Shown here: piece after piece, positions 1 to 14,065 of the stretch
Layout of the letters: each line of letters starts with the position of its first letter
Numbering within the stretch: position 1 is the stretch's first letter
Virus record (IMG/VR): IMGVR_UViG_3300049048_000052
Coordinates: 186,001 to 250,000 of that record
Reading direction: 5' to 3' (one strand)
DNA length: 64,000 nt
The notes under the pieces: model-generated
Databases searched by the model: none
Seen by the model: the letters and a program-made list of their open reading frames with translations, nothing else
What the model was told of the DNA's origin: nothing
Made by a program: the position numbers and the translations under genes

Positions 1-1
1 T

Positions 2-97
2 CCCCTATACTACTTTGCTACGCAGTCATCTGTACGTATGGATGTAGTAGAGAGTGTGTATCCAGGATGTACGGAAGTCATAACTAGGAATAAATAA
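2..97 (+). CDS. 3' end of a hypothetical protein entering from the left edge (PLYYFATQ...EVITRNK*)
   Basis: Open frame 2 from the window edge to TAA at 95-97, one base before the tmk ATG, matching the tight gene packing of this arm. Confidence 0.6.
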   Translation, partial: PLYYFATQSSVRMDVVESVYPGCTEVITRNK

Positions 98-98
98 T

Positions 99-725
99 AT
101 GAATGTGAGAAGTAACCTAATTGCCATAGAGGGCATAGATGGATGTGGTAAGTCTATACAGACGGACCTACTAGTCCAGTGGCTTATAAGTAAGGATATA
201 AAAGTTAGAAAGACAGCACAGTCTGGCGGTACCGCTATAGGTAGTCTTATAAGAAGATTAACCTTTGATACAGACAAACATGAGGGTGAGACCTTAGGGC
301 CGCTGGCTACCCAACTACTATTTATGGCAGATAGGGTACATCATCAGGAAGAGGTTATTATACCTGCCCTTAATGCTGGACATATTGTTGTTAGTGATAG
401 ATATATACAATCTGGCTTTGCATATGGTCAAGCACATGGGCTAACTGAGAATCAATGTAAGTCTATGTTTGAGGCCTGTACCTTTGTCAAACCCGCTGTA
501 ACTATATGGTTGGATCTACCCGTACAATTAGCCCTATCAAGGGTAAGAGTACAACAAAGCTTTGAGAAGTTAGGTAGACCTTTCTATGTAAAGCTAAGGG
601 AACATTATTGGAACCTCTTTATAGATGACCATAGTATGGAACGTATAGAGATAACTGAACATGACGATGTTGTATCCGTACAGGATCAAATAAGGGATAT
701 TGTAAAGGAATACTTGAGGATCTAA
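99..725 (+). CDS. tmk: thymidylate kinase
   Basis: P-loop IAIEGIDGCGKSIQ, LLFMADRVHH, DRYIQSGFAYG, TIWLDLP. Confidence 0.93.
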   Translation: MNVRSNLIAIEGIDGCGKSIQTDLLVQWLISKDIKVRKTAQSGGTAIGSLIRRLTFDTDKHEGETLGPLATQLLFMADRVHHQEEVIIPALNAGHIVVSDRYIQSGFAYGQAHGLTENQCKSMFEACTFVKPAVTIWLDLPVQLALSRVRVQQSFEKLGRPFYVKLREHYWNLFIDDHSMERIEITEHDDVVSVQDQIRDIVKEYLRI

Positions 726-1354
726 TGATTACAACCTATGGCCCTATTCCTAGGGAAGTAGGTCTAGCATTATCAGGTGGATGTGACTCAATGGCTGTAC
801 TGGACTATCTACTATTAAGTAGAAGAAAGGTTACAGCCATTCATGTTGATCATGGGGATGAATACTCAGCTGAATGTGTAGACCTGGTAACTAAATATTG
901 TAAATATAGAGATGTACCATTATACGTCTCTGAGCCTATTGGACCTAAACCAATGGGAATGTCTGAAGAAATGTGGTGGAGACAGGAACGCTATGAGTTC
1001 CTCCGGCATATACAATCTATTATTGATTTACCTATTATTACTGCCCATAACCTTGATGATCAGGTAGAGACCTGGTTAATGAGTATGATTAAGGGCACCC
1101 CCAAGTTAATCCCAAGCTATAGGGATAACCCTAATATTATTAGGCCCTTTCTACTTACAAGGAAAGAGAGTCTGAGAGACTGGTGTATACAAAAAGCTGT
1201 GCCCTTCCTAGATGACCCCGAGAATGATAATTGGGAACATGAGAGATGTTATACAAGACATCACCTGGTGTCTGCAGTAACCGATATTAATCCTGGCATT
1301 CATCGTAAGGTAGCTAAGTTAGTGAGAGACAAATATGGAGAATTATCCAGGTGA
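725..1354 (+). CDS. tilS: tRNA(Ile2)-lysidine synthetase, minimal (PP-loop catalytic domain only, 209 aa)
   Basis: ALSGGCDS, HVDHG, RQERYEFL, TAHNLDDQVETWLM, IIRPFL, DPEN and RHHL motifs in TilS order; a CAU tRNA lies about 1 kb downstream. Confidence 0.88.
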   Translation: MITTYGPIPREVGLALSGGCDSMAVLDYLLLSRRKVTAIHVDHGDEYSAECVDLVTKYCKYRDVPLYVSEPIGPKPMGMSEEMWWRQERYEFLRHIQSIIDLPIITAHNLDDQVETWLMSMIKGTPKLIPSYRDNPNIIRPFLLTRKESLRDWCIQKAVPFLDDPENDNWEHERCYTRHHLVSAVTDINPGIHRKVAKLVRDKYGELSR

Positions 1355-1799
1355 GTGGAACCCTTATGATATATACTGGGCCAACCTAATAGTTGTGAAG
1401 TCACACCTTTGGATGCCCTATAGGCTGTCCAAAGATATGATAGGAATGGTAGTAAAGGTTGATGATGATACAGCCCAAAGACTCTATGGTCGTTACTATA
1501 ATTGGTTGACACTTCACTACCTAGTAAAAGTAGAGAGTGATCCTAAGGACAGAAGTAAACGGAGGGCTACCTGGGAGAGACCAGGAGACTATAAGGCTCA
1601 GATATATAGTGTTGATGATGCTAGCTATGGAGCTTGGTTGCTACCCCGTAAACTACATGAAATAGATTACATGTGGCATCAGATAGAATGTTTCCTGATG
1701 AACAAACAGGACAACTGGCTTGAGAAGGGGCTGAATGGGCAGAAGTTCTTAGACTTCTGTAATGACAACTTCACAGCAACTAGTTTTGATTACAATTGA
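1335..1799 (+). CDS. hypothetical protein
   Basis: 154 aa ORF overlapping the tilS end, in the packed + strand gene run; no motif recognised. Confidence 0.75.
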   Translation: MENYPGEWNPYDIYWANLIVVKSHLWMPYRLSKDMIGMVVKVDDDTAQRLYGRYYNWLTLHYLVKVESDPKDRSKRRATWERPGDYKAQIYSVDDASYGAWLLPRKLHEIDYMWHQIECFLMNKQDNWLEKGLNGQKFLDFCNDNFTATSFDYN

Positions 1800-1805
1800 G
1801 GAGAA

Positions 1806-2057
1806 ATGAGAATGTTGTACTATGCAATAGTCTACAATAAGGTTAGCCTTAAAAGTTCCCTAGTAAGCGCGGGCAGCCCTGGGGCTAGATTTACCGATCC
1901 TCAGGTTGCCGAGACTAGACTAAGGAATGCAATCAAATCAGAAACAGAGTTTGGCTGTGTTTATGGAGGTCTGGGTTATACAAACGCGCTTAGGCATCCT
2001 CCCATAATATGGGTGAATGCTAGTGGCGAGGATAAGTCAAGATTGGTGGCAGGCTAA
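1806..2057 (+). CDS. small hypothetical protein
   Basis: GAGGAG Shine-Dalgarno before the ATG; stop overlaps the next start (TAATG). Confidence 0.75.
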   Translation: MRMLYYAIVYNKVSLKSSLVSAGSPGARFTDPQVAETRLRNAIKSETEFGCVYGGLGYTNALRHPPIIWVNASGEDKSRLVAG

Positions 2058-2302
2058 TGATCCTGGCAATCGCAATAAGTAGGGAAACAGGGGAATCAAA
2101 TAAGATTCCTACTAGGGAGGGTAAGTACAATTGGGATTCAAGGGAAGGTGCTGAGCAGATGCTTCAGACCGCCTTAACCTCAGACCAATATGGAGTTGTA
2201 GTGGAGGTTAATAATCCCTTCTTCCTACACCTGGGTCAAGTGCTTACATTCGTAGGTACTACAAAGGCTGACGAACAAAATTGGAGATCAGTAGTCCAAT
2301 AG
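2057..2302 (+). CDS. small hypothetical protein, possibly a distant paralog of 1806..2057
   Basis: TAATG coupling; same size and a weakly shared AE..L..A..S...G.V pattern. Confidence 0.7.
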   Translation: MILAIAISRETGESNKIPTREGKYNWDSREGAEQMLQTALTSDQYGVVVEVNNPFFLHLGQVLTFVGTTKADEQNWRSVVQ

Positions 2303-2341
2303 GTTATGATATACATAGGAGTCCATCAACTCCTATCACAC

Positions 2342-2415
2342 GCGCCTGTAGCTCAGTTGGTTAGAGCGCCGAACTCATAATTCGGATGTCCCTGGTTCGA
2401 ATCCAGGCTGGCGCA
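2342..2415 (+). tRNA. tRNA with CAU anticodon, most likely tRNA-Ile2 (lysidine substrate); no encoded CCA
   Basis: Full cloverleaf: acceptor GCGCCTG/CTGGCGC plus A73, D arm GCTC/GAGC, anticodon arm CCGAA-CTCATAA-TTCGG (CAT at 2376-2378), T arm CCTGG-TTCGAAT-CCAGG. G1:C72 is paired and there is no GGG/CCC anticodon stem, so it is not an initiator. It has C4:G69 and C5:G68, as in Ile2. Elongator Met is not excluded. Confidence 0.93.
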
Positions 2416-2416
2416 T

Positions 2417-2456
2417 TGAGTCTCCGCTAAGGCTCATGGGGACCTTAGGTCCCCAT
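2417..2456 (+). promoter_or_regulatory. two tandem stem-loops between the tRNA and the RNA ligase RBS
   Basis: TGAGTCT-ccgcta-AGGCTCA (2417-2436) and the perfect ATGGGGACC-tta-GGTCCCCAT (2436-2456), followed by TTAATAATT-AAGGAGG. Confidence 0.6.
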
Positions 2457-2476
2457 TAATAATTAAGGAGGTAACT

Positions 2477-3112
2477 ATGGTTGATCTCAAGTTCCCTAGG
2501 ACTAAACATCTGCCCTTCTCTCCTGGTAGAGGTAGTGATGATAAGGTTCACCCAGATCTTAGCTTTGTGCTAGATGGTAAGCGTCTACTGCTGACCACAA
2601 AGATGGACGGAGAGAACCAAAGGTGGACCCGTAGCAGCTTTAATCTAAGGAGTCTATCATCTACCTCGGGTGGAGAATTGAGATCTAGAGCCAAGGCTAA
2701 ATGGGGCGAAGTCTGCTACTTAATAGATGAGGGATTGTCTGTTTTTGTAGAGGACACTACAGTAGTCCACTCTATACAATATGGACCCAGACTGACCAAT
2801 CTATTCGTTATTGCGGTTAGAGATGATAAGACAGGTCACTTCATGTCCTGGTTTGATACTGAACAGTATGCTAGGAAATTGAACATGAAGACAGTGCCAG
2901 TACTATGGCACATGCAAGGCAGTGAATTTATCCGTGTTACTCTGGAGTCTTTAATAAAGGAGAGACATAGAAGTAACCATGAGGGTATTGTTTTAAGACC
3001 TGAGGACGAGATAACTAATTGGACTGCTCAGACAGCTAAATGGGTTAGGGCTAATCATGTTCAAACAGATGAGCATTGGGAGCGTACCGCCCTGAAGAAC
3101 CTGAGGAAGTAA
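2477..3112 (+). CDS. ATP-dependent RNA ligase family protein (Rnl2-like nucleotidyltransferase)
   Basis: KFPRTKHLPFSPG..DD, motif I TTKMDGEN, HSIQY, TVPVLW, HEGIVLR, AKWVRANHVQTDEHW; strong AAGGAGG RBS. Confidence 0.85.
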   Translation: MVDLKFPRTKHLPFSPGRGSDDKVHPDLSFVLDGKRLLLTTKMDGENQRWTRSSFNLRSLSSTSGGELRSRAKAKWGEVCYLIDEGLSVFVEDTTVVHSIQYGPRLTNLFVIAVRDDKTGHFMSWFDTEQYARKLNMKTVPVLWHMQGSEFIRVTLESLIKERHRSNHEGIVLRPEDEITNWTAQTAKWVRANHVQTDEHWERTALKNLRK

Positions 3113-3151
3113 TAGGAAAGCACGTGTGGTCCTTACTGCACGTGTATACCC

Positions 3152-3619
3152 TTGAGGTGGGATATGAATGAACAGGATAAACAAGAGTATCTAGAGGATC
3201 TAGAGTATGACGATACTCCCTTGACTGAGCTAGACTATAAGATCCTCTGTCGACTAAAAGATATGGCCGACGATATTATCAGTGAGAAGTGCAATACCTA
3301 CCTTGCATCTGTAGGTAGAAGTTGTAATGGATCCTTATACTCAATAGAGTATGATGGAGGTCATATCAATGTGCGTTACGTTGATCGTAGGCATTGTGGT
3401 TGTTGTAGTGACGACTATTACTCCGAGGTTATACCTGCTGCCCTGCTATGGGATGACTCTATCCTGGCTAAGGCCAAAGAGGAGTTTCTAGAGAAGCAGA
3501 GACAGAAGGCTATTGAGAAACAGGAGCATGCCAAAAGACTAGCGGCTCAACAGGCTATGGCCCAAGAGAAAAGGGATGCTGCTGAGTATGAAAGGCTAAG
3601 GGCTAAGTATGAGCAATGA
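3152..3619 (+). CDS. hypothetical protein with C-terminal coiled coil; paralog of 3609..4013; true start probably ATG 3164
   Basis: GAGGTG RBS before 3164; shares DY.IL..L...A..I.SE, PA.LLW and EYERL.AKYE with the next ORF. Confidence 0.8.
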   Translation: MRWDMNEQDKQEYLEDLEYDDTPLTELDYKILCRLKDMADDIISEKCNTYLASVGRSCNGSLYSIEYDGGHINVRYVDRRHCGCCSDDYYSEVIPAALLWDDSILAKAKEEFLEKQRQKAIEKQEHAKRLAAQQAMAQEKRDAAEYERLRAKYEQ

Positions 3620-4013
3620 GGTAGCATCTACTTACCTCAATATGTTGAGAGGTAAGGGTACTATAACTGAGACAGATTATGAGATACTCTATCAGCTATC
3701 TAGTATAGCAGTAGGCATACTAAGTGAGCGGGGTAGGGAGTATCTCAGGGCCCATGATCTAGAGGTGGTATGTTCCAGCATTGTTTCCTTAGACTTCTGG
3801 ATGAGGGAGATATGTATATGCTTCGAGATAGAGTATGAGGATGATACGTTTGCCTGGCGCCAGGTCCCAGCAGAGCTTCTATGGAATGGTGACCTAGTGG
3901 AGCAGGTTAAGAATAAGCTTAGAGAGAAGGCTGCAGCAGCTGAGGTCTCTAAGGAAGAAGCTGAATTGATTGAATATGAACGATTAAAGGCTAAATATGA
4001 AAAGCATTATTAA
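3609..4013 (+). CDS. hypothetical protein, paralog of 3152..3619
   Basis: Shared motifs as above; overlaps the previous stop. Confidence 0.8.
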   Translation: MSNEVASTYLNMLRGKGTITETDYEILYQLSSIAVGILSERGREYLRAHDLEVVCSSIVSLDFWMREICICFEIEYEDDTFAWRQVPAELLWNGDLVEQVKNKLREKAAAAEVSKEEAELIEYERLKAKYEKHY

Positions 4014-4170
4014 TAAGAAAGATAAGTTCCATCCGATGGCGGATATGTATATTACCAACTACTACGACAAAGGTATTAGACGCTTCATGGTTGATTATTG
4101 TAACCGCAATAAACCCTTAGGCTTCGCTAAAGTTAAGACTGAGGAACCTAAGGATGAAAGTAGGGGATAA
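3997..4170 (+). CDS. small ORF missing from the track (57 aa, MKSIINKKDKFHPMADMYITNYYDKGIRRFMVDYCNRNKPLGFAKVKTEEPKDESRG)
   Basis: Fills the otherwise empty 4014-4153 gap and overlaps both neighbours by 17 nt; AAGG upstream. An alternative start is ATG 4036. Confidence 0.55.
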   Translation: MKSIINKKDKFHPMADMYITNYYDKGIRRFMVDYCNRNKPLGFAKVKTEEPKDESRG

Positions 4171-4864
4171 GGTCTGGTTAGTCAGGGAGGTGGGATCCCG
4201 TAGAGAGGCTCATATAGTAGATGAGTATGCTCTAATGAGCAATCCACCTATATATGTATGGAAGGTGGCCTGCCCATCTCTGGATAGTACTGGTCTTATC
4301 TTTAGACAAGATACTAAGAAGTGTTTTAACTATGGTAACAACGCATATTGGATTGAACCTATGGATAGAGAGTTAAACCTAGAAGAGAAGGCTACTAACT
4401 TTGAGACCTATGAGCACATCAATAAGGTGATGCTCTATATGGAACAGATGAAGTTAGCCCTCGCTAAGAGACAGTTCTCACATGATAGGTCCAAATTAGA
4501 GGATCCTGAGGTAGAGATGTTCACTAGGCTTACCCATAAACTCAAAGGTATTACCTATGGTAGTCAAGAGTATAAGGACTGTCTAGCTGAGATGGGCCCT
4601 GCTTTGGAGCATCACTATTCCGAGAATGCTCATCATCCTGAGCATCACAACTTAGGGGTTGATAGCATGACTCTCATAGATGTCCTAGAGATGCTCTGTG
4701 ACTGGTATGCCTCATGTCAGCGCCATGCTGATGGGAATATTTATAAGTCTATTGATATTAATACTGAGCGCTTTGGTCTCTCAGATCAACTAGCCAATAT
4801 ATTAAGGAATACAGTGAAGCTCTTTAATGATGACTTCACTCAGACTACTCAGAAAGGTCTATAA
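4154..4864 (+). CDS. HD-superfamily phosphohydrolase-like phage protein (DUF5662-like) with an N-terminal extension
   Basis: HDRSKL, YGSQEY, ALEHHYSENAHHPEHH, MTLIDVLEMLCDW, N.ERF...QL..IL.NT. Confidence 0.75.
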   Translation: MKVGDKVWLVREVGSRREAHIVDEYALMSNPPIYVWKVACPSLDSTGLIFRQDTKKCFNYGNNAYWIEPMDRELNLEEKATNFETYEHINKVMLYMEQMKLALAKRQFSHDRSKLEDPEVEMFTRLTHKLKGITYGSQEYKDCLAEMGPALEHHYSENAHHPEHHNLGVDSMTLIDVLEMLCDWYASCQRHADGNIYKSIDINTERFGLSDQLANILRNTVKLFNDDFTQTTQKGL

Positions 4865-4869
4865 ATGAT

Positions 4870-4898
4870 GGGGGACCATAGGGCCCCCCTTTAATTTA
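4870..4898 (+). terminator. GC-rich stem-loop followed by a T-rich tract (possible intrinsic terminator or processing site)
   Basis: GGGGGACC-ata-GGGCCCCC then CTTTAATTT, directly before the next RBS. Confidence 0.45.
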
Positions 4899-4907
4899 GG
4901 GGGGTTT

Positions 4908-5579
4908 ATGAGAGACTTAGCAAGACAGATGCTATTGACTGCTCAGAAGTATGTCAATGTAGGTAAGAAGCCTCCTGGGTTTCATAGCTTTACCAATAAG
5001 TACTTAGAAGAGTATGAGAAAATCTTTAGGAATTGGAGAGAACGCACCTTCTTTCCTATGACGTTAGAGGATGTCCAGGCAGACCTACTGGCTTCATATG
5101 CTAGGGACTTTTTTGTCTATAGCTTCTCTTGGGCTATACCTTCTGATGAGGCTATAGACTTAATTGCTAGCTATGACAACATAATAGATGCTGGCGCCGG
5201 TACAGGTTACTGGGCTGGCCTATTAAGACAGCAGGGTTGTAAGGTGGAGGCTTGGGATAAGCAGCCTTATTTCAATGGCTACTGTAACACTTCTTGGTCT
5301 TATGTAGAGAGGGTAGCTCCTGCGGAGGTCTTATATAGGTTAAGTAGTAGGTGCAATCACACCTTATTACTTGTATGGCCCCCAGTGAATTCTTTTGCAT
5401 ATAAAGCCGTTAAGGCCTTTAGTGGTAATAGGGTTATATATGTGGGGGAATGGTATGGCTGTACAGGGGATGCTGATTTTCATAATTATCTTGAGGACTA
5501 CTTTGAGGTAGTTAATGTCTTAGAGATACCCCGTTGGCCCTGCATATTAGATCGTTTATACGTCTTGGAGAGAAAATAG
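4908..5579 (+). CDS. class I SAM-dependent methyltransferase-like protein
   Basis: FSWAIP, IIDAGAGTGYWAGLL (motif I), VEAWD, LLLVWPP, VIYVGE; substrate unknown. Confidence 0.75.
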   Translation: MRDLARQMLLTAQKYVNVGKKPPGFHSFTNKYLEEYEKIFRNWRERTFFPMTLEDVQADLLASYARDFFVYSFSWAIPSDEAIDLIASYDNIIDAGAGTGYWAGLLRQQGCKVEAWDKQPYFNGYCNTSWSYVERVAPAEVLYRLSSRCNHTLLLVWPPVNSFAYKAVKAFSGNRVIYVGEWYGCTGDADFHNYLEDYFEVVNVLEIPRWPCILDRLYVLERK

Positions 5580-5929
5580 CATTGGAACAATTACTATGCC
5601 ATCTAGTTGGCGATTATTTATTGCAAAACGACTGGATGGCTAGTAATAAGACTAAGGACATGTCAGTGGCTGCCATACACGGGGCCACTTACTTCCTACC
5701 TTTCTTCCTCATTACTAACTCCTTTTGGGCCCTAATAGTTATACTGATTACTCATATAATTATTGATCATTACTCCCTAGCTAGGGAGTTCAATAAGTTA
5801 AAGAATGATTGTTGGACCTTTAATGGATTCCCCCTGGATAGACCTATATGGCTCACTACGTGGGTGATCATTATTATGGATAACACTATGCACCTACTAA
5901 TTAATTACTTTGCATTGAGGTATCTATGA
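5534..5929 (+). CDS. DUF3307-like membrane protein; true start probably TTG 5582
   Basis: LL.HLVGDYLLQNDWMASNK, H...Y, TH.IIDH, DNTMH; hydrophobic helices; GGAGAG RBS upstream of 5582. Confidence 0.8.
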   Translation: MALHIRSFIRLGEKIALEQLLCHLVGDYLLQNDWMASNKTKDMSVAAIHGATYFLPFFLITNSFWALIVILITHIIIDHYSLAREFNKLKNDCWTFNGFPLDRPIWLTTWVIIIMDNTMHLLINYFALRYL

Positions 5930-6306
5930 GGGTATATCATGGTACAGATCAAGAGCTAACCCATATAAAGAAGGGTAGCTATGTAACCCCCTTTCTACAT
6001 GCAGCTAGACTATGGGGAGTTAAATGGAGCTATGAGCAGTTAATCTCAATAGATCCTAACAAAGTAGGAGAAACATTAAGATTCCGTGCGCAGGCTATAG
6101 AATCCAGTCCCCTATTTGTGTATGTCAATGAGTTAGATGAGACTCAATTAGAGAAGACTACAACTAATCAGGATGTCCTCTATCCTTACATATATAAGAC
6201 CAGGTTAGACCTATGGTTCAAAGAGGAAGAAAGATGGAGTGACTGGAAACTAGTTATTCCTTATTATGAGCGTCAGGATAGATATGGATACACACAATAC
6301 CAATAG
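5926..6306 (+). CDS. putative ADP-ribosyltransferase-fold protein (Arr-like)
   Basis: N-terminal VYHGT, then YVT...HAARLWG, resembling the YHGT...YFT..LDAA.WG pattern of rifampin ADP-ribosyltransferases. Confidence 0.5.
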   Translation: MRVYHGTDQELTHIKKGSYVTPFLHAARLWGVKWSYEQLISIDPNKVGETLRFRAQAIESSPLFVYVNELDETQLEKTTTNQDVLYPYIYKTRLDLWFKEEERWSDWKLVIPYYERQDRYGYTQYQ

Positions 6307-6997
6307 GACTAGAAACATATTCTATGACACTGAGTTCATAGAAAGGGGCCCTGATTACCCCCTAACCCTTATCAGCATAGGTATGGTAGATGATGATGGT
6401 AGAACCTTCTATAGGGTCTCCTCTGAGTTTAGGGAGGAGGACTGTAATGATTGGGTTAAGGCTAACGTACTACCTTACCTGGGTCCTACTCACCCTTGTA
6501 GTAGAGCTGAGATAGCTCATGATCTAATGGAGTTCATAGGGGCTGATAAGCCTAGGTGGTATGGTTATTACTCTGCCTATGACCATGTGCTCCTATGCCA
6601 ACTCTTTGGTACTATGATAGAGCTTCCCAAGGGGTGGCCTATGTATACTAGGGACATTAAGCAAATGTTGGATTCCATCGGCAATCCAGAGGTGCCTAAG
6701 GACTTCAATGGAGTACTCCATAACGCTCTTGAGGATGCTCTATGGAATAAGAAGGTATACGAATGGCTATTAGGTCTAGGCTGTATAGAATCTAATGCTA
6801 GTCATAGGGATCGTATGGAACGCCTGTTATATGATATGAAGCTGGACTATAATAACCCCGAGCTAGTCCAATATTCCGGGTATGAAAATACGGATAATAT
6901 AATCCTCTTAGGTAATGGAAGAGGCTACAGAGGTTTTACTGCAGAGTTCTTCTTTAATCCAGATGGATCCTTCGACCATCATGGAATATGGGAATAG
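6266..6997 (+). CDS. 3'-5' exoribonuclease, DEDDh Rv2179c/DUF5051-like, with a C-terminal extension
   Basis: IFYDTEF, LISIGMV, NDWVKANVLP, YYSAYDHV, HNALEDA. Confidence 0.88.
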   Translation: MSVRIDMDTHNTNRTRNIFYDTEFIERGPDYPLTLISIGMVDDDGRTFYRVSSEFREEDCNDWVKANVLPYLGPTHPCSRAEIAHDLMEFIGADKPRWYGYYSAYDHVLLCQLFGTMIELPKGWPMYTRDIKQMLDSIGNPEVPKDFNGVLHNALEDALWNKKVYEWLLGLGCIESNASHRDRMERLLYDMKLDYNNPELVQYSGYENTDNIILLGNGRGYRGFTAEFFFNPDGSFDHHGIWE

Positions 6998-7018
6998 GTT
7001 AATTGATTATATAAAATA

Positions 7019-7058
7019 CCCCGGCCTGGTATAGGGAGTTCGATTCTCCTACCGGGGA
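7019..7058 (+). ncRNA. tRNA-like minihelix (acceptor stem plus T arm, no D or anticodon arm)
   Basis: CCCCGG (7019-24) pairs with CCGGGG (7052-57), then discriminator A; T arm GGGAG-TTCGATT-CTCCT; only 8 nt lie where the D and anticodon arms would be. Confidence 0.45.
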
Positions 7059-7109
7059 CTTTGGGAGTCCCATCTCCCTCCTATTGATTTCATAGATAAT
7101 AAGGATACT

Positions 7110-8297
7110 ATGCTATCAAACAGATTTATGACCGAACCACTATTTATAAGTATACTGGGCCCTGCGGGGGTCGGTAAGTCGTTTACGGTTAATGAGAAGC
7201 TTAAAGAGGATCCATCCTACTGTATGAGGACCAGTACCACTGGTATATCAGCAGTGAACCTAGGAGGGGGTGCCATGACTATTAACTCAGCCCTCAAATA
7301 TTTTAATACTAAGCAGCTACTAATGAAGGTAGCCAATAAAGAAATAGATAGTATTCTGAAGAAGATCAGTGAGAGATTCAGGTACATAGTTATAGATGAG
7401 TGCTCTATGTTAGATGCCGCTCAGGTGGACCTTATATATACTGCTATATGTAGATTTAATGCTCAGAATAGAAAGAGGAAGTTAGGACTATATCTAACTG
7501 GTGATAGTGGTCAGTTGCCTGCTGTAAGTGGTAAGCCCTTCTTTGAGGCTAGATACTGGAATGCCTTTCATGTCTCATATCTAACTGAGGTAAAGAGACA
7601 GAGTGATAAGGACTTTATTAAGGCATTACAACTAGTGAGAGCAGGTAGGCCCGAGGAGGCTGTAGACTGGTTTGAGGAGAACATAGGATTCCATAGTTCT
7701 ATTGATGAGGACTTTGAGGGCTCCACTTTCTTCTCTATGAATGCTGAGGTGGATACCTATAACTTTAGGAAGCTCACTGAGTTAGAGGGCGTATCCAAGA
7801 AGTATGTAGCCCTAATAGAGGGTACACCTATGGCTGTGTGGAAGGACATACCTAAGTATGTTGAACTAAAGAAGGGCGCCCTCATTACTATCCTTATCAA
7901 TAACATTGAGCAGGGTTATGCCAATGGTGATATGGCCATCGTCCAGGAGACCTTTGACACCTGTATCCTAGTTAAGCTACTGAGAACTAAGAGGCAGGTA
8001 TACATCCATTATCATGGTGTAAATAATGTGCCCCTAGGTCAATATAAACCTGTAGGTTCTATCAGTTACTTACCAGTTAGATTATCGTGGGCCAGCACTA
8101 TTCATAAGAGTCAGTCTCTGAGTCTAGATGCAGTACAGATTAAGTTAGGTGGTGAGTTCCTAGAGAGATTAAGTGGTGGTTTATATACTGCTCTATCTAG
8201 AGTAAGGACAAAGGAAGGCCTACGCATAGTAGGTAATAGAGAATCGTTTATACAAAGTTGTTACGTTGATCCTAGATACATTCCATATATTAAATAG
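7110..8297 (+). CDS. SF1B DNA helicase (Pif1/RecD/Dda-like)
   Basis: GPAGVGKS, IVIDECSM, GDSGQLPAV, LTEVKRQ, NGD, WASTIHKSQ, YTALSR. Confidence 0.92.
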   Translation: MLSNRFMTEPLFISILGPAGVGKSFTVNEKLKEDPSYCMRTSTTGISAVNLGGGAMTINSALKYFNTKQLLMKVANKEIDSILKKISERFRYIVIDECSMLDAAQVDLIYTAICRFNAQNRKRKLGLYLTGDSGQLPAVSGKPFFEARYWNAFHVSYLTEVKRQSDKDFIKALQLVRAGRPEEAVDWFEENIGFHSSIDEDFEGSTFFSMNAEVDTYNFRKLTELEGVSKKYVALIEGTPMAVWKDIPKYVELKKGALITILINNIEQGYANGDMAIVQETFDTCILVKLLRTKRQVYIHYHGVNNVPLGQYKPVGSISYLPVRLSWASTIHKSQSLSLDAVQIKLGGEFLERLSGGLYTALSRVRTKEGLRIVGNRESFIQSCYVDPRYIPYIK

Positions 8298-8307
8298 GTA
8301 TAGATAA

Positions 8308-9057
8308 ATGAGTAACTTACAGGACCTCTACAGGGAAATGGATAATAAAGTGAAGAATATGAATGAGCTCAAAACAGAGTTCTCTGAGCTTATGTTCTTT
8401 GTTGATTACCCAGAGATAGATACGGTTCACTTCTATTGTGAATATGAATACAACGATCAGGGTGGTACTTATCCTGTGTTTAGGATAAACACAGTAGAAA
8501 TACATGATGAGCAAAGAAGGGCTCAGTTCCTCAACCGTATGGGTTATCCAGATACTGATATGGAGGAATGGTTAGAGGAGGAAGGCAGCTATGAGTTTGG
8601 TTATATATTAGGTAGATATATTGAAAGCCATGCGGATGAATATGGCGAGGGCTCCTTACATAATGATAGGGAAACTCTAGGAGAGCGTTGTCTAAGTCTG
8701 GCTCAGAGAATGAGTGAAGCTATAGGCTCATCCAATATCCCTATCGTATATATAGTAGAAGAAGTCATAGTTAACTATGATGATTCCTACTATAGATTAG
8801 CAGAGGGTCATCAGGCTGACTCTGTATTCCTAGATAAGAAAGCAGCAGAGAAGAAAGCAGAGCAATGTGCCCTCTATATCCTTAAGGAATATGGTGATGA
8901 CATAGAGTACATTGAGGATCATATCACCTGGCCTAGTGACTATATGTACCTAGGAGCTGATAAGCTTGTACAGGATATATTAGATGGTACTTTAGGTATT
9001 GATAGAGTGGGATATAGCTCCCTTGCTAAAGTGAGGGAAATAAAAATAGAAGGTTAA
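8308..9057 (+). CDS. acidic hypothetical protein; N-terminal domain related to the 9763-11034 paralogs
   Basis: FFVDYPEIDTVHF..EYNDQGG matches FF.KYP....V.V..S..YND.GG of the paralogs. Confidence 0.8.
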   Translation: MSNLQDLYREMDNKVKNMNELKTEFSELMFFVDYPEIDTVHFYCEYEYNDQGGTYPVFRINTVEIHDEQRRAQFLNRMGYPDTDMEEWLEEEGSYEFGYILGRYIESHADEYGEGSLHNDRETLGERCLSLAQRMSEAIGSSNIPIVYIVEEVIVNYDDSYYRLAEGHQADSVFLDKKAAEKKAEQCALYILKEYGDDIEYIEDHITWPSDYMYLGADKLVQDILDGTLGIDRVGYSSLAKVREIKIEG

Positions 9058-9058
9058 T

Positions 9059-9766
9059 ATGAAAGGTTTATCTATTACAGCCATCGGTCGGCGTCCCATA
9101 GAGGAATGTGTAAATATCTACTATGAGTTGATCGATAAGCTAGGAGTAGAGTACCTTCAGTTAGCAGTTGGGTCTAAGTGTAATGTGGAGTATTTAGATG
9201 GCCTAGATACTCCCTTTACTCTGCATGATAGCTGTCTATACGAGGGGGACTCTAGGTTATTCATTAATCCGTTAGAAGATACTAACTATGATAGGTATAA
9301 GGACTTCATAGAGAAGCACCAGGTTAGTTATATGGGTATACATCCTCCATTAAAGAAGGACTGTACTCAGCGTGAGTTAAGAGAAGGCCTTCAGTATATG
9401 TCTAAGTACTTAGGTATACCTGTGGCCCTAGAGATAATGCCTAGTCCTGAGTACTGGATGTCTGAGGATAATATGGTACCTGGTGTCCCTATCCTCCTGG
9501 ATATTAGTCATATAAATCTATGGACTGAGGGTAATCTTAGTAGGGCCGAGAATGTCTCCTTATCCCTATTAGAGAGATACCAAGTACTAGAGATACATCT
9601 CTCACATAACAGAGGCAGGGCTGATTCTCATGATATGATTCCGAGGTCCATCTGGTTTAACCAATACTTAGAACAGTGGGACGATGAGTATCGTCTTGTA
9701 ACCTATGAGTCTGTACCTATTGATTATAAGGAATACGAAAGGTTAGATAAGAGGAGAAATAAATGA
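9059..9766 (+). CDS. TIM-barrel metalloenzyme (xylose isomerase/AP-endonuclease-2-like superfamily)
   Basis: Metal-ligand motifs GIHP, ALEIMP, LLDISH, EIHLSHN.G..DSH and YE in barrel order. Confidence 0.75.
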   Translation: MKGLSITAIGRRPIEECVNIYYELIDKLGVEYLQLAVGSKCNVEYLDGLDTPFTLHDSCLYEGDSRLFINPLEDTNYDRYKDFIEKHQVSYMGIHPPLKKDCTQRELREGLQYMSKYLGIPVALEIMPSPEYWMSEDNMVPGVPILLDISHINLWTEGNLSRAENVSLSLLERYQVLEIHLSHNRGRADSHDMIPRSIWFNQYLEQWDDEYRLVTYESVPIDYKEYERLDKRRNK

Positions 9767-10170
9767 CATTAAACATAGATGACTTAGTCCTTAAACTTAA
9801 GAGGACCCATAATCTGCTGACCACTTATAAATTGTTTCAGAAGTACCCTGAGATTAAACAGGTTAAAGTAAGGTTCTCTAACCAATATAACGATTGGGGT
9901 GGTTATGATGAGGTTATTGAACTAAAAGGTGTGGGACTCTTTGAGGATAAAGCAGAAGAGTTCACAGCCTCTATGAAGAGGTTTGCTAGCCCAGACCTTA
10001 ATTTAGAAGAGATCATAGAATGTGGTTCAGGATACCCGCAGCAACTTCATTATATTGAGGATGAGGAAGTCACTTATACTAATCCAGGCCCCGAGGTTAT
10101 AGAGAGTAATCTACTCAGTATTGAGGCTATGCTCTGGGGCATCAATAAGTTAAATGAAGTACAGGAATGA
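9763..10170 (+). CDS. acidic hypothetical protein, tandem paralog 1 of 3
   Basis: LK.THNLL.T, KYP, SNQYNDWGG, GYP, YTNPGP; ATGA coupling. Confidence 0.85.
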   Translation: MTLNIDDLVLKLKRTHNLLTTYKLFQKYPEIKQVKVRFSNQYNDWGGYDEVIELKGVGLFEDKAEEFTASMKRFASPDLNLEEIIECGSGYPQQLHYIEDEEVTYTNPGPEVIESNLLSIEAMLWGINKLNEVQE

Positions 10171-10604
10171 GTAGCGCTAATATAGGTGTTCTAGTAGAAA
10201 AACTAAAGATAACCCATAACTTGCTAGAGACCCTAAAGTTCTTTCATAAATATCCTCAACTTGATTATGTGGTGGTTAAACACTCTAATAACTATAACGA
10301 TGAGGGTGGGTTCTATGACTCCGTGTCGCTGTATGACTTTGAGATATTAGAGGGACAGGAGCAATTCCTATTGGAAGCCTTTAACTTCAATGTATGTAAC
10401 CCTGATCATATATGTGCCTTTGATATAGAGGATACCACTGGATATCCCAACACACTATGGTTTACCTATGATGGGGATGAGGTTACCTACCACAACCCTG
10501 GACCTGATAAGGCAGCCGCTTACATTGATCATACAGAGACTACTATTAAGGGCATCAATGCCTTATTTGAACTAAACGATATGTGTAAGGGTAAGTATGA
10601 GTGA
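10167..10604 (+). CDS. acidic hypothetical protein, tandem paralog 2 of 3
   Basis: LKITHNLLET, KYP, SNNYNDEGG, GYP, YHNPGP. Confidence 0.85.
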   Translation: MSSANIGVLVEKLKITHNLLETLKFFHKYPQLDYVVVKHSNNYNDEGGFYDSVSLYDFEILEGQEQFLLEAFNFNVCNPDHICAFDIEDTTGYPNTLWFTYDGDEVTYHNPGPDKAAAYIDHTETTIKGINALFELNDMCKGKYE

Positions 10605-11034
10605 AAGTCTGGCAACCGGCATTATAAAAGAGCTGAAAAAGTTACACAATGCATTGAGAACTCTAGAGTTCTTTAAGGAATACCCTCAAGTAGAGAGCCT
10701 TCAGGTTGAGTGCTGTAGGAGCTATGATGACCATGAGTATTATGATGATATGCAACTGGTCAAGATAGAACTTATAGAGGGTAGAGAGGAAGAGTTCTGT
10801 GACCTAATACAGGTAGATAGGACCTACTGGAAGGAGGAGGGCTTTGGGTTTGAAGTAGAACCCCAAACTAACTACCCTCATGAGTATCTCATGTATATGC
10901 ACGATGGTTATATAGTCGATTATGTTAATCCAGGGCCTGCCTTAATAGATTGTAATATAAGATCTATTGAGGGAAGACTTAGGGCGATAGCAGGTTTATT
11001 ACATATGGACTTAGAGGAATATGACTATAATTAA
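10597..11034 (+). CDS. acidic hypothetical protein, tandem paralog 3 of 3
   Basis: LKKLHNALRT, EYP, RSYDDHE, NYP, YVNPGP. Confidence 0.85.
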   Translation: MSESLATGIIKELKKLHNALRTLEFFKEYPQVESLQVECCRSYDDHEYYDDMQLVKIELIEGREEEFCDLIQVDRTYWKEEGFGFEVEPQTNYPHEYLMYMHDGYIVDYVNPGPALIDCNIRSIEGRLRAIAGLLHMDLEEYDYN

Positions 11035-12151
11035 AGAAAGTCCTACATACATCAGTAAAGCTAAGAAAGGTAATGATAAGTTCTGGAGGATAGCTGTACT
11101 TGAGAAAGGCACATCTTATTACACCAGACAGGAATACTGGCAGACCACTAATGATGGCACGGATAGTGTCCATCAGTTTAGTGAACCTAAGCTCATTACA
11201 CCTAAGAACGTAGGTAAGAAGAACGAGACTAGCCCCCTAGCACAAGCCCTATCTGAGATGGAGTCAACTATACTCCGATATAAGGATAAGGGTTATCATC
11301 TAGAGGGTGAAGACGCGGCTACCCTCATACTACCTATGCTTGCTATGGAATATAGTAAACGTAAGGCAGTCAATAAGGTTACATGGCCTATGTATGGTCA
11401 ACCCAAGTTAGACGGGGCCCGTTGCTTATACAGTAATAAGACTGGATTCTATAGTAGGATGGGTAAACCTTTCCTAGCTGAGGTTACAGCTCATATTCAC
11501 AGACCAAGTATCAAGGATAGCTACATACTAGATGGAGAGCTTATACTACTTAGGCCCTATACTTTCCAGGATACAATGAAGGCCATCAAGAAGTTTAGGG
11601 AGGACCTAAGTCCTCAGCTAGTATATGTAACCTACGATGTTATAGATACTGAGAATCTAGATATGCCCTTCATTGAGAGGCTAGACTTATTAGATCATAT
11701 CCATTCTATCTTTCTATCTAGAAGTATGGTGACCTGTAAGACTGAGACTCTAGTCGACGAGGAGGATATGCTTAAGTATCATACAGAGATTATCCGATTA
11801 GGCTTCGAGGGCACAATGCTTAGGGATCCTAACTCTACCTATAGTATTAATCATAGGAGCGCTGGGCTACTCAAGTATAAGGACTTCCTTGATGATGACT
11901 TTGAGATCACTAATGTAGTCTCAGGTGTGGCTAAGTTCAAGGACTGCGGCATATTCGAATGTAGAACCAAGGATGGTCAGATCTTCTCTGTAACACCTCA
12001 GGGCACCCTTGAGGAGAAGCAGGAGTACCTCAAGAAGTCCAAGGAGTTAATTGGTCAGTTACTTAAAGTTAAATATCAGAATTTATCAGAGGATGGTATA
12101 CCTAGATTCCCAGTGGGTATAGGTATACGAGATAAAAATGTAGAGGGCTAA
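11021..12151 (+). CDS. ATP-dependent DNA ligase with an N-terminal WGR-like domain
   Basis: QPKLDGAR (motif I), LDGEL, FEGTMLR, LLKYK, KVKYQ, PRFPV. Confidence 0.93.
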   Translation: MTIIKESPTYISKAKKGNDKFWRIAVLEKGTSYYTRQEYWQTTNDGTDSVHQFSEPKLITPKNVGKKNETSPLAQALSEMESTILRYKDKGYHLEGEDAATLILPMLAMEYSKRKAVNKVTWPMYGQPKLDGARCLYSNKTGFYSRMGKPFLAEVTAHIHRPSIKDSYILDGELILLRPYTFQDTMKAIKKFREDLSPQLVYVTYDVIDTENLDMPFIERLDLLDHIHSIFLSRSMVTCKTETLVDEEDMLKYHTEIIRLGFEGTMLRDPNSTYSINHRSAGLLKYKDFLDDDFEITNVVSGVAKFKDCGIFECRTKDGQIFSVTPQGTLEEKQEYLKKSKELIGQLLKVKYQNLSEDGIPRFPVGIGIRDKNVEG

Positions 12152-13444
12152 ATGTTAGATGATATTACTATTCAAAGGCTAGAGAGATTAAAGAACCACA
12201 TAGGCCTGTCTAGTATACATCCTGACTTCAATACTAGAGGGGCGTCTAATTGCCCCTTTTGTAATAAGAAGGGTAAGGGTTATATAGTAGATGACCAGTT
12301 CTTCAAGTGCTATAGCAGTAGGTGTGCTACCCAAGGCGACCTCGTATCTATCTATAGGAAACTACACGGACTAGAGGGTAAAGGATCATTCTTTACAGCC
12401 ATATCTGAGTTAGAGAAGCTAGCAGGACTATCTGATCTTACTGAGACTAATGATGAGAGATCTGAACTCTTAGGGGAGGTAGTTGACACCTATGCCTCTA
12501 TCCTATGGACATCCGAGGGTAGAGAAGCACTCAAGTATCTAAAGAGTAGAGGCTTTGATGATATTAGCCTTAATATGTACCAAGTAGGATATGCACCACA
12601 AGGTTCAACCCTACTCAAGTATGGCTTTGATATTAATAAGCTAAGTCAGCATCAATTATATGATAGGCGCCATGAGAAGGAATACTTCTCTAATCGTATT
12701 ACCTTCCCCATTAGGGATATGCAAGGTAAGTATGTTCATATAGTTGGTCGTTGGTTAGGTGATGTACCCAAGGATGAGAATGGGGATGATAAATGGCTAA
12801 GGTATAAGGACAGTAAGGGTCCAATTACTAGTAAGAACTACTTCGCCTTTGAGCATCTAATCCCTGCTTTTAGTCTTAGGAACAAACCATACCTTGTATT
12901 AACTGAAGGGTTCCCTGATGCACTAACCTTAAATCAGGCAGGCATTCCTGCTATAGCTATCCTAGGACTTGAAGGCCTTCTTAAACAGTATCAAAAGTTT
13001 AAGGATCTAGAGGAACTAATAGTCGTAGCTGATAATGATTACTTTGCTGAGGATCATCCATTATATCCGCTTGAATATAAGAGTTGGAGAAGGTTGATAC
13101 CACAACTAGTAGAGCTGCAGATCATGCTACCTCAGGTCAAGATCAGTTGGCTTATGGTACCTGAGGGCGGCACCACTAGTAGAGGTATTAGCTATAGCTG
13201 TAAAGATGTTAATGATTGGTATAACAGATCTGGTATGAGCAGTAGAGATCTACAGGCTCATATCATAGCTAATAAACAAGAGTTAGTACCTACCCTCATA
13301 GAGAAGTGGGGCCCAGATCTTAGTAGACACTTATCCTTAATTAGGTTAATAACTGCTACGGGCTCTGATGTTAGGCAACTAGAGAGATATATACCTGTGG
13401 GCTGGAGTCCTATAACGTACGCATCTCAAGTCTTCTCTTCATGA
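12152..13444 (+). CDS. dnaG: DnaG-type DNA primase
   Basis: Zn finger CPFC...FKCYSSRC, ALKYLKSRG, FSNRITFPI, TOPRIM LTEGFPDAL and ADND, KDVNDW. Confidence 0.9.
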   Translation: MLDDITIQRLERLKNHIGLSSIHPDFNTRGASNCPFCNKKGKGYIVDDQFFKCYSSRCATQGDLVSIYRKLHGLEGKGSFFTAISELEKLAGLSDLTETNDERSELLGEVVDTYASILWTSEGREALKYLKSRGFDDISLNMYQVGYAPQGSTLLKYGFDINKLSQHQLYDRRHEKEYFSNRITFPIRDMQGKYVHIVGRWLGDVPKDENGDDKWLRYKDSKGPITSKNYFAFEHLIPAFSLRNKPYLVLTEGFPDALTLNQAGIPAIAILGLEGLLKQYQKFKDLEELIVVADNDYFAEDHPLYPLEYKSWRRLIPQLVELQIMLPQVKISWLMVPEGGTTSRGISYSCKDVNDWYNRSGMSSRDLQAHIIANKQELVPTLIEKWGPDLSRHLSLIRLITATGSDVRQLERYIPVGWSPITYASQVFSS

Positions 13445-13483
13445 TTTAATTGATCCATTGATTGGTACTTAAACTTAAGAACC

Positions 13484-14047: not shown

Positions 14048-14065
14048 GAACAAACTATAAATATT

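Follow-up and report, generated by a model that had tools for sequence, protein, structure and literature searches.

The window analysed here, the whole 64,000-nt stretch at positions 186,001 to 250,000 of the IMG/VR record IMGVR_UViG_3300049048_000052, belongs to a soil jumbo phage genome of 251,780 bp, which was rated 100% complete by CheckV; the only sequencing runs holding the sequence are two DNA soil metagenomes. Near the start of the window a run of genes on the plus strand begins with tmk (99-725), encoding a dTMP kinase of 208 aa (TIGR00041, 122.3 bits against a cut-off of 83; PF02223, 111.8 bits). It is followed by tilS (725-1354), encoding a putative minimal tRNA(Ile)-lysidine synthetase of 209 aa, the start of which overlaps the stop of tmk by one base (TAATG). 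The third gene, orf154 (1335-1799, 154 aa), overlaps the 3' end of tilS by 20 nt, suggesting translational coupling. Two small ORFs of 83 aa (1806-2057) and 81 aa (2057-2302), for which no family hits and no homologues in related loci were found, separate orf154 from a tRNA gene with the anticodon CAU (2342-2415), located 987 nt after the tilS stop on the same strand. A promoter and terminator scan of positions 1-3300 gave counts at chance level.

The tRNA was identified by both ARAGORN and Rfam (RF00005, 72.3 bits) as a canonical cloverleaf with the anticodon loop CUCAUAA, including A37 and A38, and the anticodon stem CCGAA/UUCGG. The pairs read from the sequence are G1:C72, C2:G71, G3:C70, C4:G69, C5:G68, a U6xU67 mismatch, G7:C66 and G29:C41, followed by A73, and no CCA is encoded. 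In tmk, 14 of 19 Ile codons are ATA, 4 are ATT and 1 is ATC. Thus, every feature described in the original prediction proved to be present, including the short TilS without C-terminal domains, the tRNA pairs and the codon count in tmk.

A clade of catalytic-domain-only TilS proteins

The 209-aa protein matched PF01171 (99.9 bits) and exceeded the curated cut-off of the NCBIfam model TIGR02432 (lysidine_TilS_N; 107.5 bits against 93.6), while other PP-loop families (TtcA, TtuA, QueC, PAPS reductase) scored below 21 bits. It carries the ATP-binding motif SGGxDS as S17-G18-G19-C20-D21-S22, invariant in 32 family members, and the TilS motifs beyond the PP-loop (E..R..RY, H..DD..ET, RP, D.SN....R..R). 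The other residues invariant in the phage family (E82, R89, H108, D112, E115, R140-P141, D164, N167, R174 and R178), as well as those of the PP-loop, align with residues shared by three TilS proteins of solved structure (1WY5, 3A2K and 1NI5). The family profile aligns to residues 25-228 of Aquifex aeolicus TilS (317 aa) and 20-224 of Geobacillus kaustophilus TilS (464 aa), covering the helical TilS-specific subdomain. An AlphaFold2 model (pLDDT 95.1) was predicted to fold like TilS catalytic domains: the top five Foldseek PDB hits were all TilS, with the TilS-tRNA complex 3a2k at rank 7, and TM-scores over these, including 1ni5 and 2e21, were 0.80-0.86 by the query. TtuA and NcsA were the next-best structural hits.

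Compared with type I TilS (Escherichia coli MesJ/TilS, 1NI5; G. kaustophilus, 3A2K), the phage protein has the same catalytic PP-loop domain and motifs (26-28% identity, TM 0.80-0.81 by the query). Type I enzymes, however, are 430-465 aa long and carry CTD1, which reads the tRNA body and the anticodon stem, and CTD2, which reads the acceptor stem. The best sequence match among solved structures was the type II enzyme of A. aeolicus (1WY5, 2E21, 2E89; E = 6e-35), which, like that of Mycobacterium smegmatis, lacks CTD2 but keeps CTD1 (about 317 aa). The phage protein ends about 20 residues after the N-domain and belongs to neither type, as no hit to CTD1 (PF09179) was found in the protein or in a six-frame search of the genome at E <= 0.1, and none to CTD2 (PF11734) in the protein or in the genome. 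In the literature all known TilS enzymes are stated to keep at least CTD1, and deletion of CTD2 from a type I enzyme strongly lowers activity (PMC11947777), so an N-domain alone might be weak or need a partner. The product of orf154 was considered as a stand-in tRNA-binding domain, but it gave no Pfam, PHROG or NCBIfam hit, no fold and no informative Atlas match, and no homologue was present in 81 related IMG/VR loci; it was similar (48% identity over 42 aa) only to the ORF downstream of tilS in L001, the closest relative. It is therefore rejected as a general partner, although it may still be a lineage-specific accessory.

The loss of the C-terminal domains is general within the family. All 67 non-identical IMG/VR homologues are 196-227 aa long, and nearly all of the top 150 of 2609 clusters found at E <= 1e-30 are 181-230 aa. 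At least 514 IMG/VR contigs carry the short type, whereas only one contig was found among 185,579 GTDB species genomes. In a tree with 77 bacterial TilS proteins, 33 short sequences were placed on one side of a branch with SH-aLRT support of 99. Naturally shortened TilS proteins of reduced cellular genomes (Saccharibacteria, 275-309 aa; Elusimicrobiota, 243 aa) are longer than the phage type and fall among bacterial TilS in this tree.

TilS has previously been annotated in the Pseudomonas jumbo phages PA5oct and MIJ3, in pelagimyophages (PMP-A) and in Ralstonia phage RsoM2USA, but these papers (PMC6892783, PMC7029224, PMC8504454) report the gene only as an annotation, with its function stated as unknown, and none notes the domain loss, the tRNA linkage or the codon avoidance described below. 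The PA5oct and MIJ3 proteins (203 aa, 38% identity) belong to the same short family and are encoded 7-10 kb downstream of three CAU tRNAs, two of which have an ileX-like anticodon arm; these phages are cultivable and infect P. aeruginosa, in which AUA is rare, offering an immediate experimental entry point. The RsoM2USA protein is 349 aa long and only 29% identical.

Linkage to CAU tRNAs and avoidance of ATA

Among 46 related loci that have any tRNA, CAU is the nearest tRNA in 23, against a 15% share of all tRNAs (p = 3e-8). It lies within 200 nt of tilS in 15 loci, often within 40 nt, and always on the same strand. No other gene of the window is syntenic with tilS in these loci. The related loci are not phylogenetically independent, so the p-values given here overstate the evidence. 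Adjacency within 5-40 nt in many loci suggests co-transcription of an enzyme and its substrate. However, about half of the loci with tRNAs have no CAU tRNA within 3 kb of tilS. In this phage the tRNA sits about 1 kb away, and it belongs to a different lineage (G15:C48, no CCA) from most TilS-adjacent phage tRNAs (A15:U48, CCA encoded).

The window tRNA is best read as tRNA-Ile2. It is not an initiator, since the 1:72 mismatch, A11:U24 and G12:C23, and the three G:C pairs at 29-31:39-41 are absent (G1:C72, C11 and U12 are present). According to a survey of 1070 tRNAs of 234 genomes (Silva et al. 2006, PMC1635315), the acceptor-stem discriminators against tRNA-Met are G3 or A3 with C70 or U70, G3:C70 excludes tRNA-Met and tRNA-fMet, and C4:G69 and C5:G68 are frequent in tRNA-Ile(CAU). 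In 24 further diverse bacterial genomes C70 with G69 was never seen in initiators or in metT-type arms. Of 27 TilS-linked tRNAs, 21 have G3 or A3. E. coli ileX has C4:G69, C5:G68 and C29:G41, while metT has C3:G70, U4:A69 and A5:U68. The window tRNA thus lacks C29:G41, the E. coli IleRS and TilS identity pair, but this element is known for E. coli only and is not decisive for a phage of unknown host. Whole-sequence identity does not separate the classes: it was 68% to ileX, 69% to metT, 58% to fMet and 74% to a PGAP-labelled prophage tRNA-Ile, all from E. coli rather than from the host's taxon. The closest tRNA in 5426 E. coli genomes is a lambdoid-prophage gene labelled tRNA-Ile by PGAP (81.7% identity), which shares G3:C70, C4:G69 and C5:G68. 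Lambdoid and Stx phages, with a tRNA-Ile downstream of Q, and T4 supply a CAU tRNA to read ATA while relying on the TilS of the host; here the predicted modifying enzyme is supplied as well.

ARAGORN found no UAU-anticodon tRNA in the genome. A second CAU tRNA confirmed by Rfam (genome 57971-58043, A3:U70) could be the real or an additional substrate of TilS. Two further CAU tRNAs (132233 and 134128) and a tmRNA (132310-132626) called by ARAGORN were not confirmed by Rfam at the gathering score.

ATA accounts for 877 of 1472 Ile codons in 50 long ORFs of the window (59.6%, 43.5 per 1000 codons) and for 2372 of 4872 in the whole genome (48.7%, 32.9 per 1000); the published bacterial range for AUA is 0.6 (Burkholderia cenocepacia), 4.9 (E. 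coli) and 39 (Borrelia burgdorferi) per 1000 (PMC12514573). This richness is one face of a genome-wide TpA excess (odds 1.29) and CpG depletion (0.38), with all NTA codons being favoured. Across 67 tilS-bearing loci ATA averages 27% of Ile codons, individual loci ranging from 5 to 67%, so that a match to extreme ATA usage, as originally predicted, holds for this phage only. Moreover, the capsid gene (1 of 29 Ile codons) and a 13-kb block with host-like codons (37.5-50.8 kb of the genome; 0 of 85 in its largest ORF) avoid ATA. AUA is therefore not simply advantageous, and the tilS-tRNA pair does not make it a fast codon.

The tilS genes specifically avoid ATA, which occurs at 57 of 861 Ile codons (6.6%) against 4431 of 16203 (27%) in the flanks, and is lower in tilS in 62 of 67 loci (Wilcoxon 2e-11). 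Nine controls (GTA, CTA, TTA, AGR, GGA, ACA, AAA, TCA and CCA) showed ratios of 0.92-1.05, none of them significant. In this phage tmk (14 of 19) and the coupled tilS (2 of 16) differ at Fisher p = 5e-4 with equal GC3. Recent horizontal transfer as the reason for the avoidance was rejected, since GC3 equals that of tmk, the other phage-preferred codons are used normally in tilS (AGR 13 of 16) and the avoidance recurs across a deep clade.

A predicted AUA-decoding pair

Taken together, these data are best explained by a phage-borne AUA-decoding pair, with a probability of roughly 0.7. In this view the short TilS, using ATP and lysine, would convert C34 of the phage CAU tRNA to lysidine, which, as established for TilS generally, switches the tRNA from Met/AUG to Ile/AUA; host enzymes would add CCA and charge the tRNA with Ile; and the pair would raise AUA-decoding capacity during infection, the ATA richness of this phage probably being a by-product of its TpA-rich, CpG-poor sequence bias. 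Lysidine formation, charging with Ile and the gain in decoding are all inferred from sequence, predicted structure and comparative evidence alone. What the analysis shows directly is that tilS genes avoid ATA and that the arrangement is a conserved phage invention rather than a one-off, with one clade of short TilS, almost entirely from viral or metagenomic sequence, linked to CAU tRNAs in the proportion of loci given above. That the avoidance arises because the enzyme must be made before the decoding capacity exists is again an inference.

The original interpretation is thus only partly supported. Its core, that the phage brings its own TilS and tRNA-Ile2 for AUA decoding, is supported by the conserved adjacency, the tRNA discriminators and the codon avoidance. 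The claim of a complete module is too strong, since no IleRS, no CCA-adding enzyme and no t6A machinery were found in the genome and the tRNA lacks CCA, so that maturation and charging would depend on the host. The suggestion that the enzyme may recognise only the phage tRNA, marked by G29:C41, remains conjectural; TilS-linked tRNAs of related phages share no fixed 29:41, 4:69 or 5:68 pair. With both tRNA-recognition domains missing, discrimination against tRNA-Met would have to rest on the anticodon arm, on an unidentified partner or on co-expression with the cognate tRNA.

The absence of shared pairs also leaves room for an unlikely alternative, in which the short TilS acts mainly on the tRNA-Ile2 of the host, topping up its lysidinylation when AUA demand jumps, while the phage tRNA is modified by the full-length host TilS or by both enzymes, the two genes being linked only because both serve AUA decoding. 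An N-domain-only enzyme has no acceptor-stem reader and should accept any tRNA with a suitable anticodon arm, the C4:G69 and C5:G68 pairs of the window tRNA are E. coli-type determinants for a full-length host TilS, and CAU tRNAs are missing within 3 kb of tilS in about half of the loci with tRNAs. On the other hand, the close same-strand adjacency points to co-transcription, and a second enzyme would be most useful for a substrate that the host TilS handles poorly; many TilS-linked tRNAs have G4:C69 and G5:C68, or G1:U72, unlike ileX, the only bacterial reference compared.

It is improbable that the enzyme is promiscuous and also lysidinylates host elongator or initiator tRNA-Met, reprogramming or shutting down host translation as a takeover device, with the linked tRNA being incidental. 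tRNA-Met and tRNA-Ile2 share the CUCAUAA loop, and in type I TilS the appended domains reject tRNA-Met and removal of CTD2 relaxes specificity, but the enzyme without CTD2 still rejected tRNA-Met (PMC11947777). Phage genes need AUG decoding and initiation as much as host genes do, and the ATA avoidance and the link to an Ile2-type tRNA are predicted by an AUA-decoding role, not by shut-off.

Equally doubtful is a different chemistry, such as the attachment of another amine to C34 or the modification of a nucleotide or DNA base, with the tRNA being an ordinary elongator tRNA-Met. This might be suggested by the coupling of tmk and tilS here and in L001, the versatility of PP-loop enzymes and the equal identity of the tRNA to metT and ileX. 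However, tmk is absent next to tilS in all 81 IMG/VR loci, whereas CAU tRNAs are present, so tmk is regarded as context and not as part of the decoding module; the TilS-specific motifs are all kept and the curated model is passed; G3:C70 is reported never to occur in tRNA-Met; and the ATA avoidance has no explanation under this reading.

A large natural clade of catalytic-domain-only proteins, many with a candidate cognate tRNA encoded nearby, would represent a third TilS architecture and a minimal system for the question of how TilS, essential in most bacteria, tells tRNA-Ile2 from tRNA-Met. The avoidance of a codon by a gene needed to decode it might be used to find other decoding-capacity genes in viruses. 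It would also follow that large phages can carry both tRNAs and the modification enzyme that sets the identity of a tRNA, loosening their dependence on host codon preferences.

A more speculative and rather unlikely possibility is sense-codon gating of the infection programme. The 37.5-50.8 kb block, presumably of early genes, includes a 1613-aa protein that resembles two-barrel YonO/crAss-type RNA polymerases, and its codons are almost free of ATA, AGA/AGG, CTA and TTA. The rest of the genome would be read efficiently only once the tRNAs of the phage (Arg-UCU, Arg-CCU, Leu-UAA and Ile2-CAU) and its minimal TilS have accumulated, so that TilS and tRNA-Ile2 would act as a translational timer, a sense-codon analogue of stop-codon recoding in Lak and crAss-like phages. 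In addition, the N-domain-only TilS would show that tRNA-Ile2 can be told from tRNA-Met by the anticodon arm alone.

An exact 32-mer of the tRNA had no match in the 185,579 species genomes and gave no clue to the host. The phage has no close cultured relative, as a megablast search of 6 kb of the window against 50,697 phage records returned no match, and its baseplate proteins are only 25% identical to those of Microcystis phage Ma-LMM01.

A predicted minimal TilS in a soil jumbo phage and its relatives

The window covers bases 186001-250000 of a 251,780-bp virus record, a single contig (GC 42.6%) that CheckV rates as 100% complete; the record was assembled from a soil metagenome, so that its host is unknown. 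It represents a tailed jumbo phage encoding baseplate proteins, a large terminase, an HK97-type capsid gene, a primase, a ligase and a Dda-like helicase, and no close cultured relative was found. Four features lie on the + strand at the left end of the window: tmk (99-725), an ORF of 209 aa similar to TilS (725-1354), which overlaps the tmk stop by one base, orf154 (1335-1799), which overlaps the end of tilS by 20 nt and is followed by two small ORFs, and a tRNA with the anticodon CAU (2342-2415). An RNA ligase gene (2477-3112, + strand; PF09414 at 58 bits, PHROG 24030 'RNA ligase') starts 62 nt after the tRNA, behind a GGGGACC/GGTCCCC hairpin at 2438-2454, and may perform tRNA repair next to the tRNA. 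The observation underlying the original prediction was confirmed in every specific statement: the sizes, the tRNA pairs C4:G69, C5:G68 and G29:C41, the 14 ATA among 19 Ile codons of tmk, and the dominance of ATA across the window (59.6% of Ile codons). Its interpretation, that the phage supplies a complete AUA-decoding module giving a translational advantage or independence from the tRNA-Ile2 of the host, was only partly supported.

The 209-aa protein passes the curated NCBI model for the TilS N-terminal domain (107.5 bits against a cut-off of 93.6), while other PP-loop families score far lower. A profile of its family aligns to residues 25-228 of Aquifex aeolicus TilS (317 aa), 20-224 of Geobacillus kaustophilus TilS (464 aa) and 13-202 of Escherichia coli TilS (433 aa), which is the catalytic domain and nothing more, and all residues invariant in the family coincide with residues shared by these three solved enzymes. 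An AlphaFold model (pLDDT 95) matches TilS catalytic domains best, with TM of 0.80-0.86 by the query. Neither CTD1 (PF09179) nor CTD2 (PF11734) was found in the protein or in a six-frame search of the genome. Recent TilS papers state that all known enzymes have at least CTD1 (type II) or CTD1 plus CTD2 (type I) (PMC11947777, PMC12514573); this protein fits neither type.

The short protein belongs to a large family. A word-indexed search found 71 homologues of about 200 aa, many of them on contigs of 100-420 kb, and an exhaustive profile search found 2609 clusters at E <= 1e-30, nearly all of the best 150 of which are 181-230 aa long. IMG/VR holds at least 514 contigs encoding a relative, and in 67 non-identical loci the ORF is 196-227 aa. 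Among one genome for each of 185,579 prokaryotic species only one contig, in a Halobacteriovorax MAG, carries the short type, while the other 79 best hits are ordinary bacterial TilS with a median length of 443 aa. In a quick maximum-likelihood tree the 33 short sequences occupy one side of a branch with SH-aLRT 99, against 77 bacterial sequences that group by phylum; the tree is unrooted, and the term clade therefore assumes that the root lies among the bacteria. Cellular TilS proteins are also short in some reduced genomes (275-309 aa in Saccharibacteria and 243 aa in Elusimicrobiota), but these cluster with bacterial TilS and not with the phage clade. The only cultured carriers found are the Pseudomonas jumbo phages of the PA5oct/MIJ3 group (203 aa, 38% identity). 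PA5oct has two CAU tRNAs (267558-267631 and 268039-268112), both annotated as tRNA-Met, whose bodies are identical and whose anticodon arm matches that of E. coli ileX, although their acceptor stems differ completely (CCCUCGG against GGGACUU); a third one is initiator-like with C1xA72.

Linkage to CAU tRNAs and their identity

Of the 81 IMG/VR loci (10-kb flanks) together with the window and its closest relative (L001), 46 contain at least one tRNA, and a CAU tRNA is the one nearest to tilS in 23 of them, although CAU tRNAs make up only 15% of all tRNAs there (binomial p = 3e-8; the loci are not independent). The CAU tRNA lies within 200 nt of tilS in 15 loci and within 3 kb in 27, always on the same strand. 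The full records behind five long contigs with no CAU tRNA nearby were also searched; all five are incomplete (21-77%), three carry CAU tRNAs elsewhere, and the two without them are the 25% and 34% fragments. None of the other window genes (tmk, orf154, RNA ligase and others) recurs beside tilS, which removes the nucleotide-metabolism reading that the coupling with tmk might suggest.

The discriminators of tRNA-Ile2 were taken from a study of 1070 CAU tRNAs from 234 genomes (Silva et al. 2006, PMC1635315), in which G3, A3, C70 or U70 are reported to exclude tRNA-Met and tRNA-fMet, which usually have C3:G70, while C4:G69 and C5:G68 are frequent in tRNA-Ile(CAU), and A11:U24 with G12:C23 marks initiators. 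The window tRNA has G3:C70, C4:G69, C5:G68, C11 and U12. Of 27 distinct TilS-linked tRNAs, 21 have G3 or A3 and none has the initiator D-stem. As an independent comparison, the 3' halves of CAU tRNAs were collected from 24 bacterial genomes of many phyla. All initiators have G70, the five tRNAs with a metT-like anticodon arm have G70 or A70 and never G69 with G68, and C70 with G69 occurs only in the remaining class; in five of the seven genomes where two non-initiator kinds were caught, one kind had C70 and the other G70 or A70. The best match among 5426 E. coli genomes is a lambdoid-prophage tRNA downstream of Q, labelled tRNA-Ile by PGAP, which is 81.7% identical and shares the 3:70, 4:69 and 5:68 pairs. 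However, overall identity does not separate ileX (68%) from metT (69%), and the window tRNA has a U6xU67 mismatch and G29:C41. It also belongs to a different lineage (G15:C48, no CCA) from most TilS-adjacent phage tRNAs, which form a distinct lineage starting with an unusual G1:U72 wobble pair (13 of 27) or an A1:U72 pair (7 of 27), having A15:U48 and encoding CCA. A second CAU tRNA supported by Rfam lies at genome 57971-58043 and has A3:U70. In contrast, the tmRNA-like call of ARAGORN, two further CAU tRNAs (one initiator-like with A11:U24 and G12:C23) and a tRNA-Phe, at genome 132233-132626, 134128-134201 and 53358-53432, were not confirmed by Rfam at gathering score and may be degenerate tRNAs or false calls.

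Codon usage of tilS and of the genome

If the product of tilS is needed to read AUA, its own mRNA should avoid this codon, and it does. In 67 loci, tilS genes use ATA for 57 of 861 Ile codons (6.6%), against 4431 of 16203 (27.3%) in the flanking genes. ATA is lower in tilS in 62 of 67 loci (Wilcoxon p = 2e-11), and tilS is the lowest-ATA gene of its locus in 37 of them. The effect is specific, since nine control codons (GTA, CTA, TTA, AGA/AGG, GGA, ACA, AAA, TCA and CCA) have tilS-to-flank ratios of 0.92-1.05, none of them significant. In this phage the contrast is stark within one operon, with ATA at 14 of 19 Ile codons in tmk and 2 of 16 in tilS (Fisher p = 5e-4), although GC3 is equal and tilS uses the other phage-preferred codons fully (AGR 13 of 16). 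This avoidance, of which no mention was found in the literature searched, is regarded as the strongest in silico support for the inferred lysidine/AUA assignment, to which a different chemistry of the enzyme is a rival explanation.

Genome-wide, ATA makes up 48.7% of Ile codons (32.9 per 1000 codons, and 43.5 per 1000 in the window). Published bacterial values are 0.6 for Burkholderia cenocepacia, 4.9 for E. coli and 39 for Borrelia burgdorferi with its GC of 28% (PMC12514573); the usage is extreme for a genome of 42.6% GC. It is not an isolated preference: all NTA codons are favoured (GTA 41%, CTA 29%, TTA 24%), AGA/AGG make up 75% of Arg codons, and all NCG and CGN codons are rare. The dinucleotide odds are unusual, with CpG at 0.38, AA/TT at 0.77 and TpA, which is normally under-represented, at 1.29; DNA modification, restriction avoidance or mutational bias are possible causes. 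The ATA richness therefore looks like a consequence of a bias at the DNA level for which, by inference, the phage compensates. ARAGORN calls tRNAs for AGA, AGG and UUA, of which the AGA and UUA genes were confirmed by Rfam, whereas the AGG gene lies outside the stretches scanned; no UAU tRNA was found by ARAGORN. A tRNA with the anticodon CUA, which would read the amber codon, lies at genome 50858-50929 (called 'Pyl' by ARAGORN, 37.4 bits in Rfam), and TAG ends 93 of 271 long ORFs in an ORF call with the standard code. Two group I introns within the tRNA-rich region, at genome 120479-121155 and 130487-130728, pass the gathering score of Rfam (54 and 67 bits).

The usage of ATA is uneven along the genome. 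The major capsid gene (PF03864; genome 9158-10486, - strand) has only 1 ATA in 29 Ile codons but normal AGR use, and together with its neighbour it uses AGA/AGG for 27 of 32 Arg codons; the most highly expressed late gene thus avoids ATA specifically. A block at genome 37.5-50.8 kb (1500-14800 of the genome stretch L084; GC 47%) is nearly free of ATA and uses quite different, host-like codons: its largest ORF, of 1613 aa (L084:5819-10660, + strand), has ATA at 0 of 85, AGA/AGG at 2 of 85, CTA at 5 of 132 and TTA at 6 of 132, with GC 47-49%. The block still keeps the CpG and AA/TT depletion of the genome. The 1613-aa ORF matches PHROG 30979 (unknown function) and, in a language-model feature search of the ESM Atlas, resembles PF05183 'RdRP'-type two-barrel polymerases (score 0.94), which is a lead only. 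It is inferred that AUA remains a slow codon even with the module, since the capsid gene avoids it, and that the block may be an early, host-codon-adapted gene set, possibly including the phage RNA polymerase; such a set would also serve as a proxy for host preferences.

Probable mode of action and comparison with known phage TilS

The genome encodes no IleRS-family gene and no CCA-adding enzyme, and the window tRNA lacks an encoded CCA; describing the module as complete and host-independent was therefore too strong. The present analysis establishes the domain content of the enzyme, the size of its family and its mostly viral or metagenomic distribution, the linkage to CAU tRNAs, the Ile2-type discriminators and the avoidance of ATA in tilS, whereas the formation of lysidine on the phage tRNA, its charging by the host IleRS and the relief of an AUA bottleneck are inferred, although this is the most likely mode of action. 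As to how an enzyme without CTD1 and CTD2 would reject tRNA-Met, the TilS-linked tRNAs were found to share the CUCAUAA loop with tRNA-Met and to have no common 29:41, 4:69 or 5:68 pair, so that the suggestion made in the original prediction, of G29:C41 as a private determinant, has no comparative support. Action on the tRNA-Ile2 of the host and promiscuous action on tRNA-Met are further rival explanations.

Phage-encoded TilS has been noted as an annotation in MIJ3/PA5oct (2019, 'function unknown'), in pelagimyophages (2020) and in RsoM2USA (2021, a protein of 349 aa), and phage-borne tRNA-Ile(CAU) is long known. In open-access papers and bioRxiv, to which the search was confined and outside which a prior description cannot be excluded, no description was found of a single clade of catalytic-domain-only phage enzymes outside types I and II, of their physical coupling to Ile2-type CAU tRNAs, of the ATA-specific avoidance in the gene, or of the codon partition in this genome, and a comparative review of jumbo phages does not mention TilS at all. 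The finding is well supported computationally and is readily testable in the PA5oct/Pseudomonas aeruginosa system. The window also contains an ORF of 2962 aa (18303-27188, - strand), located next to the terminase and structural genes, in which ATA accounts for 118 of 180 Ile codons.
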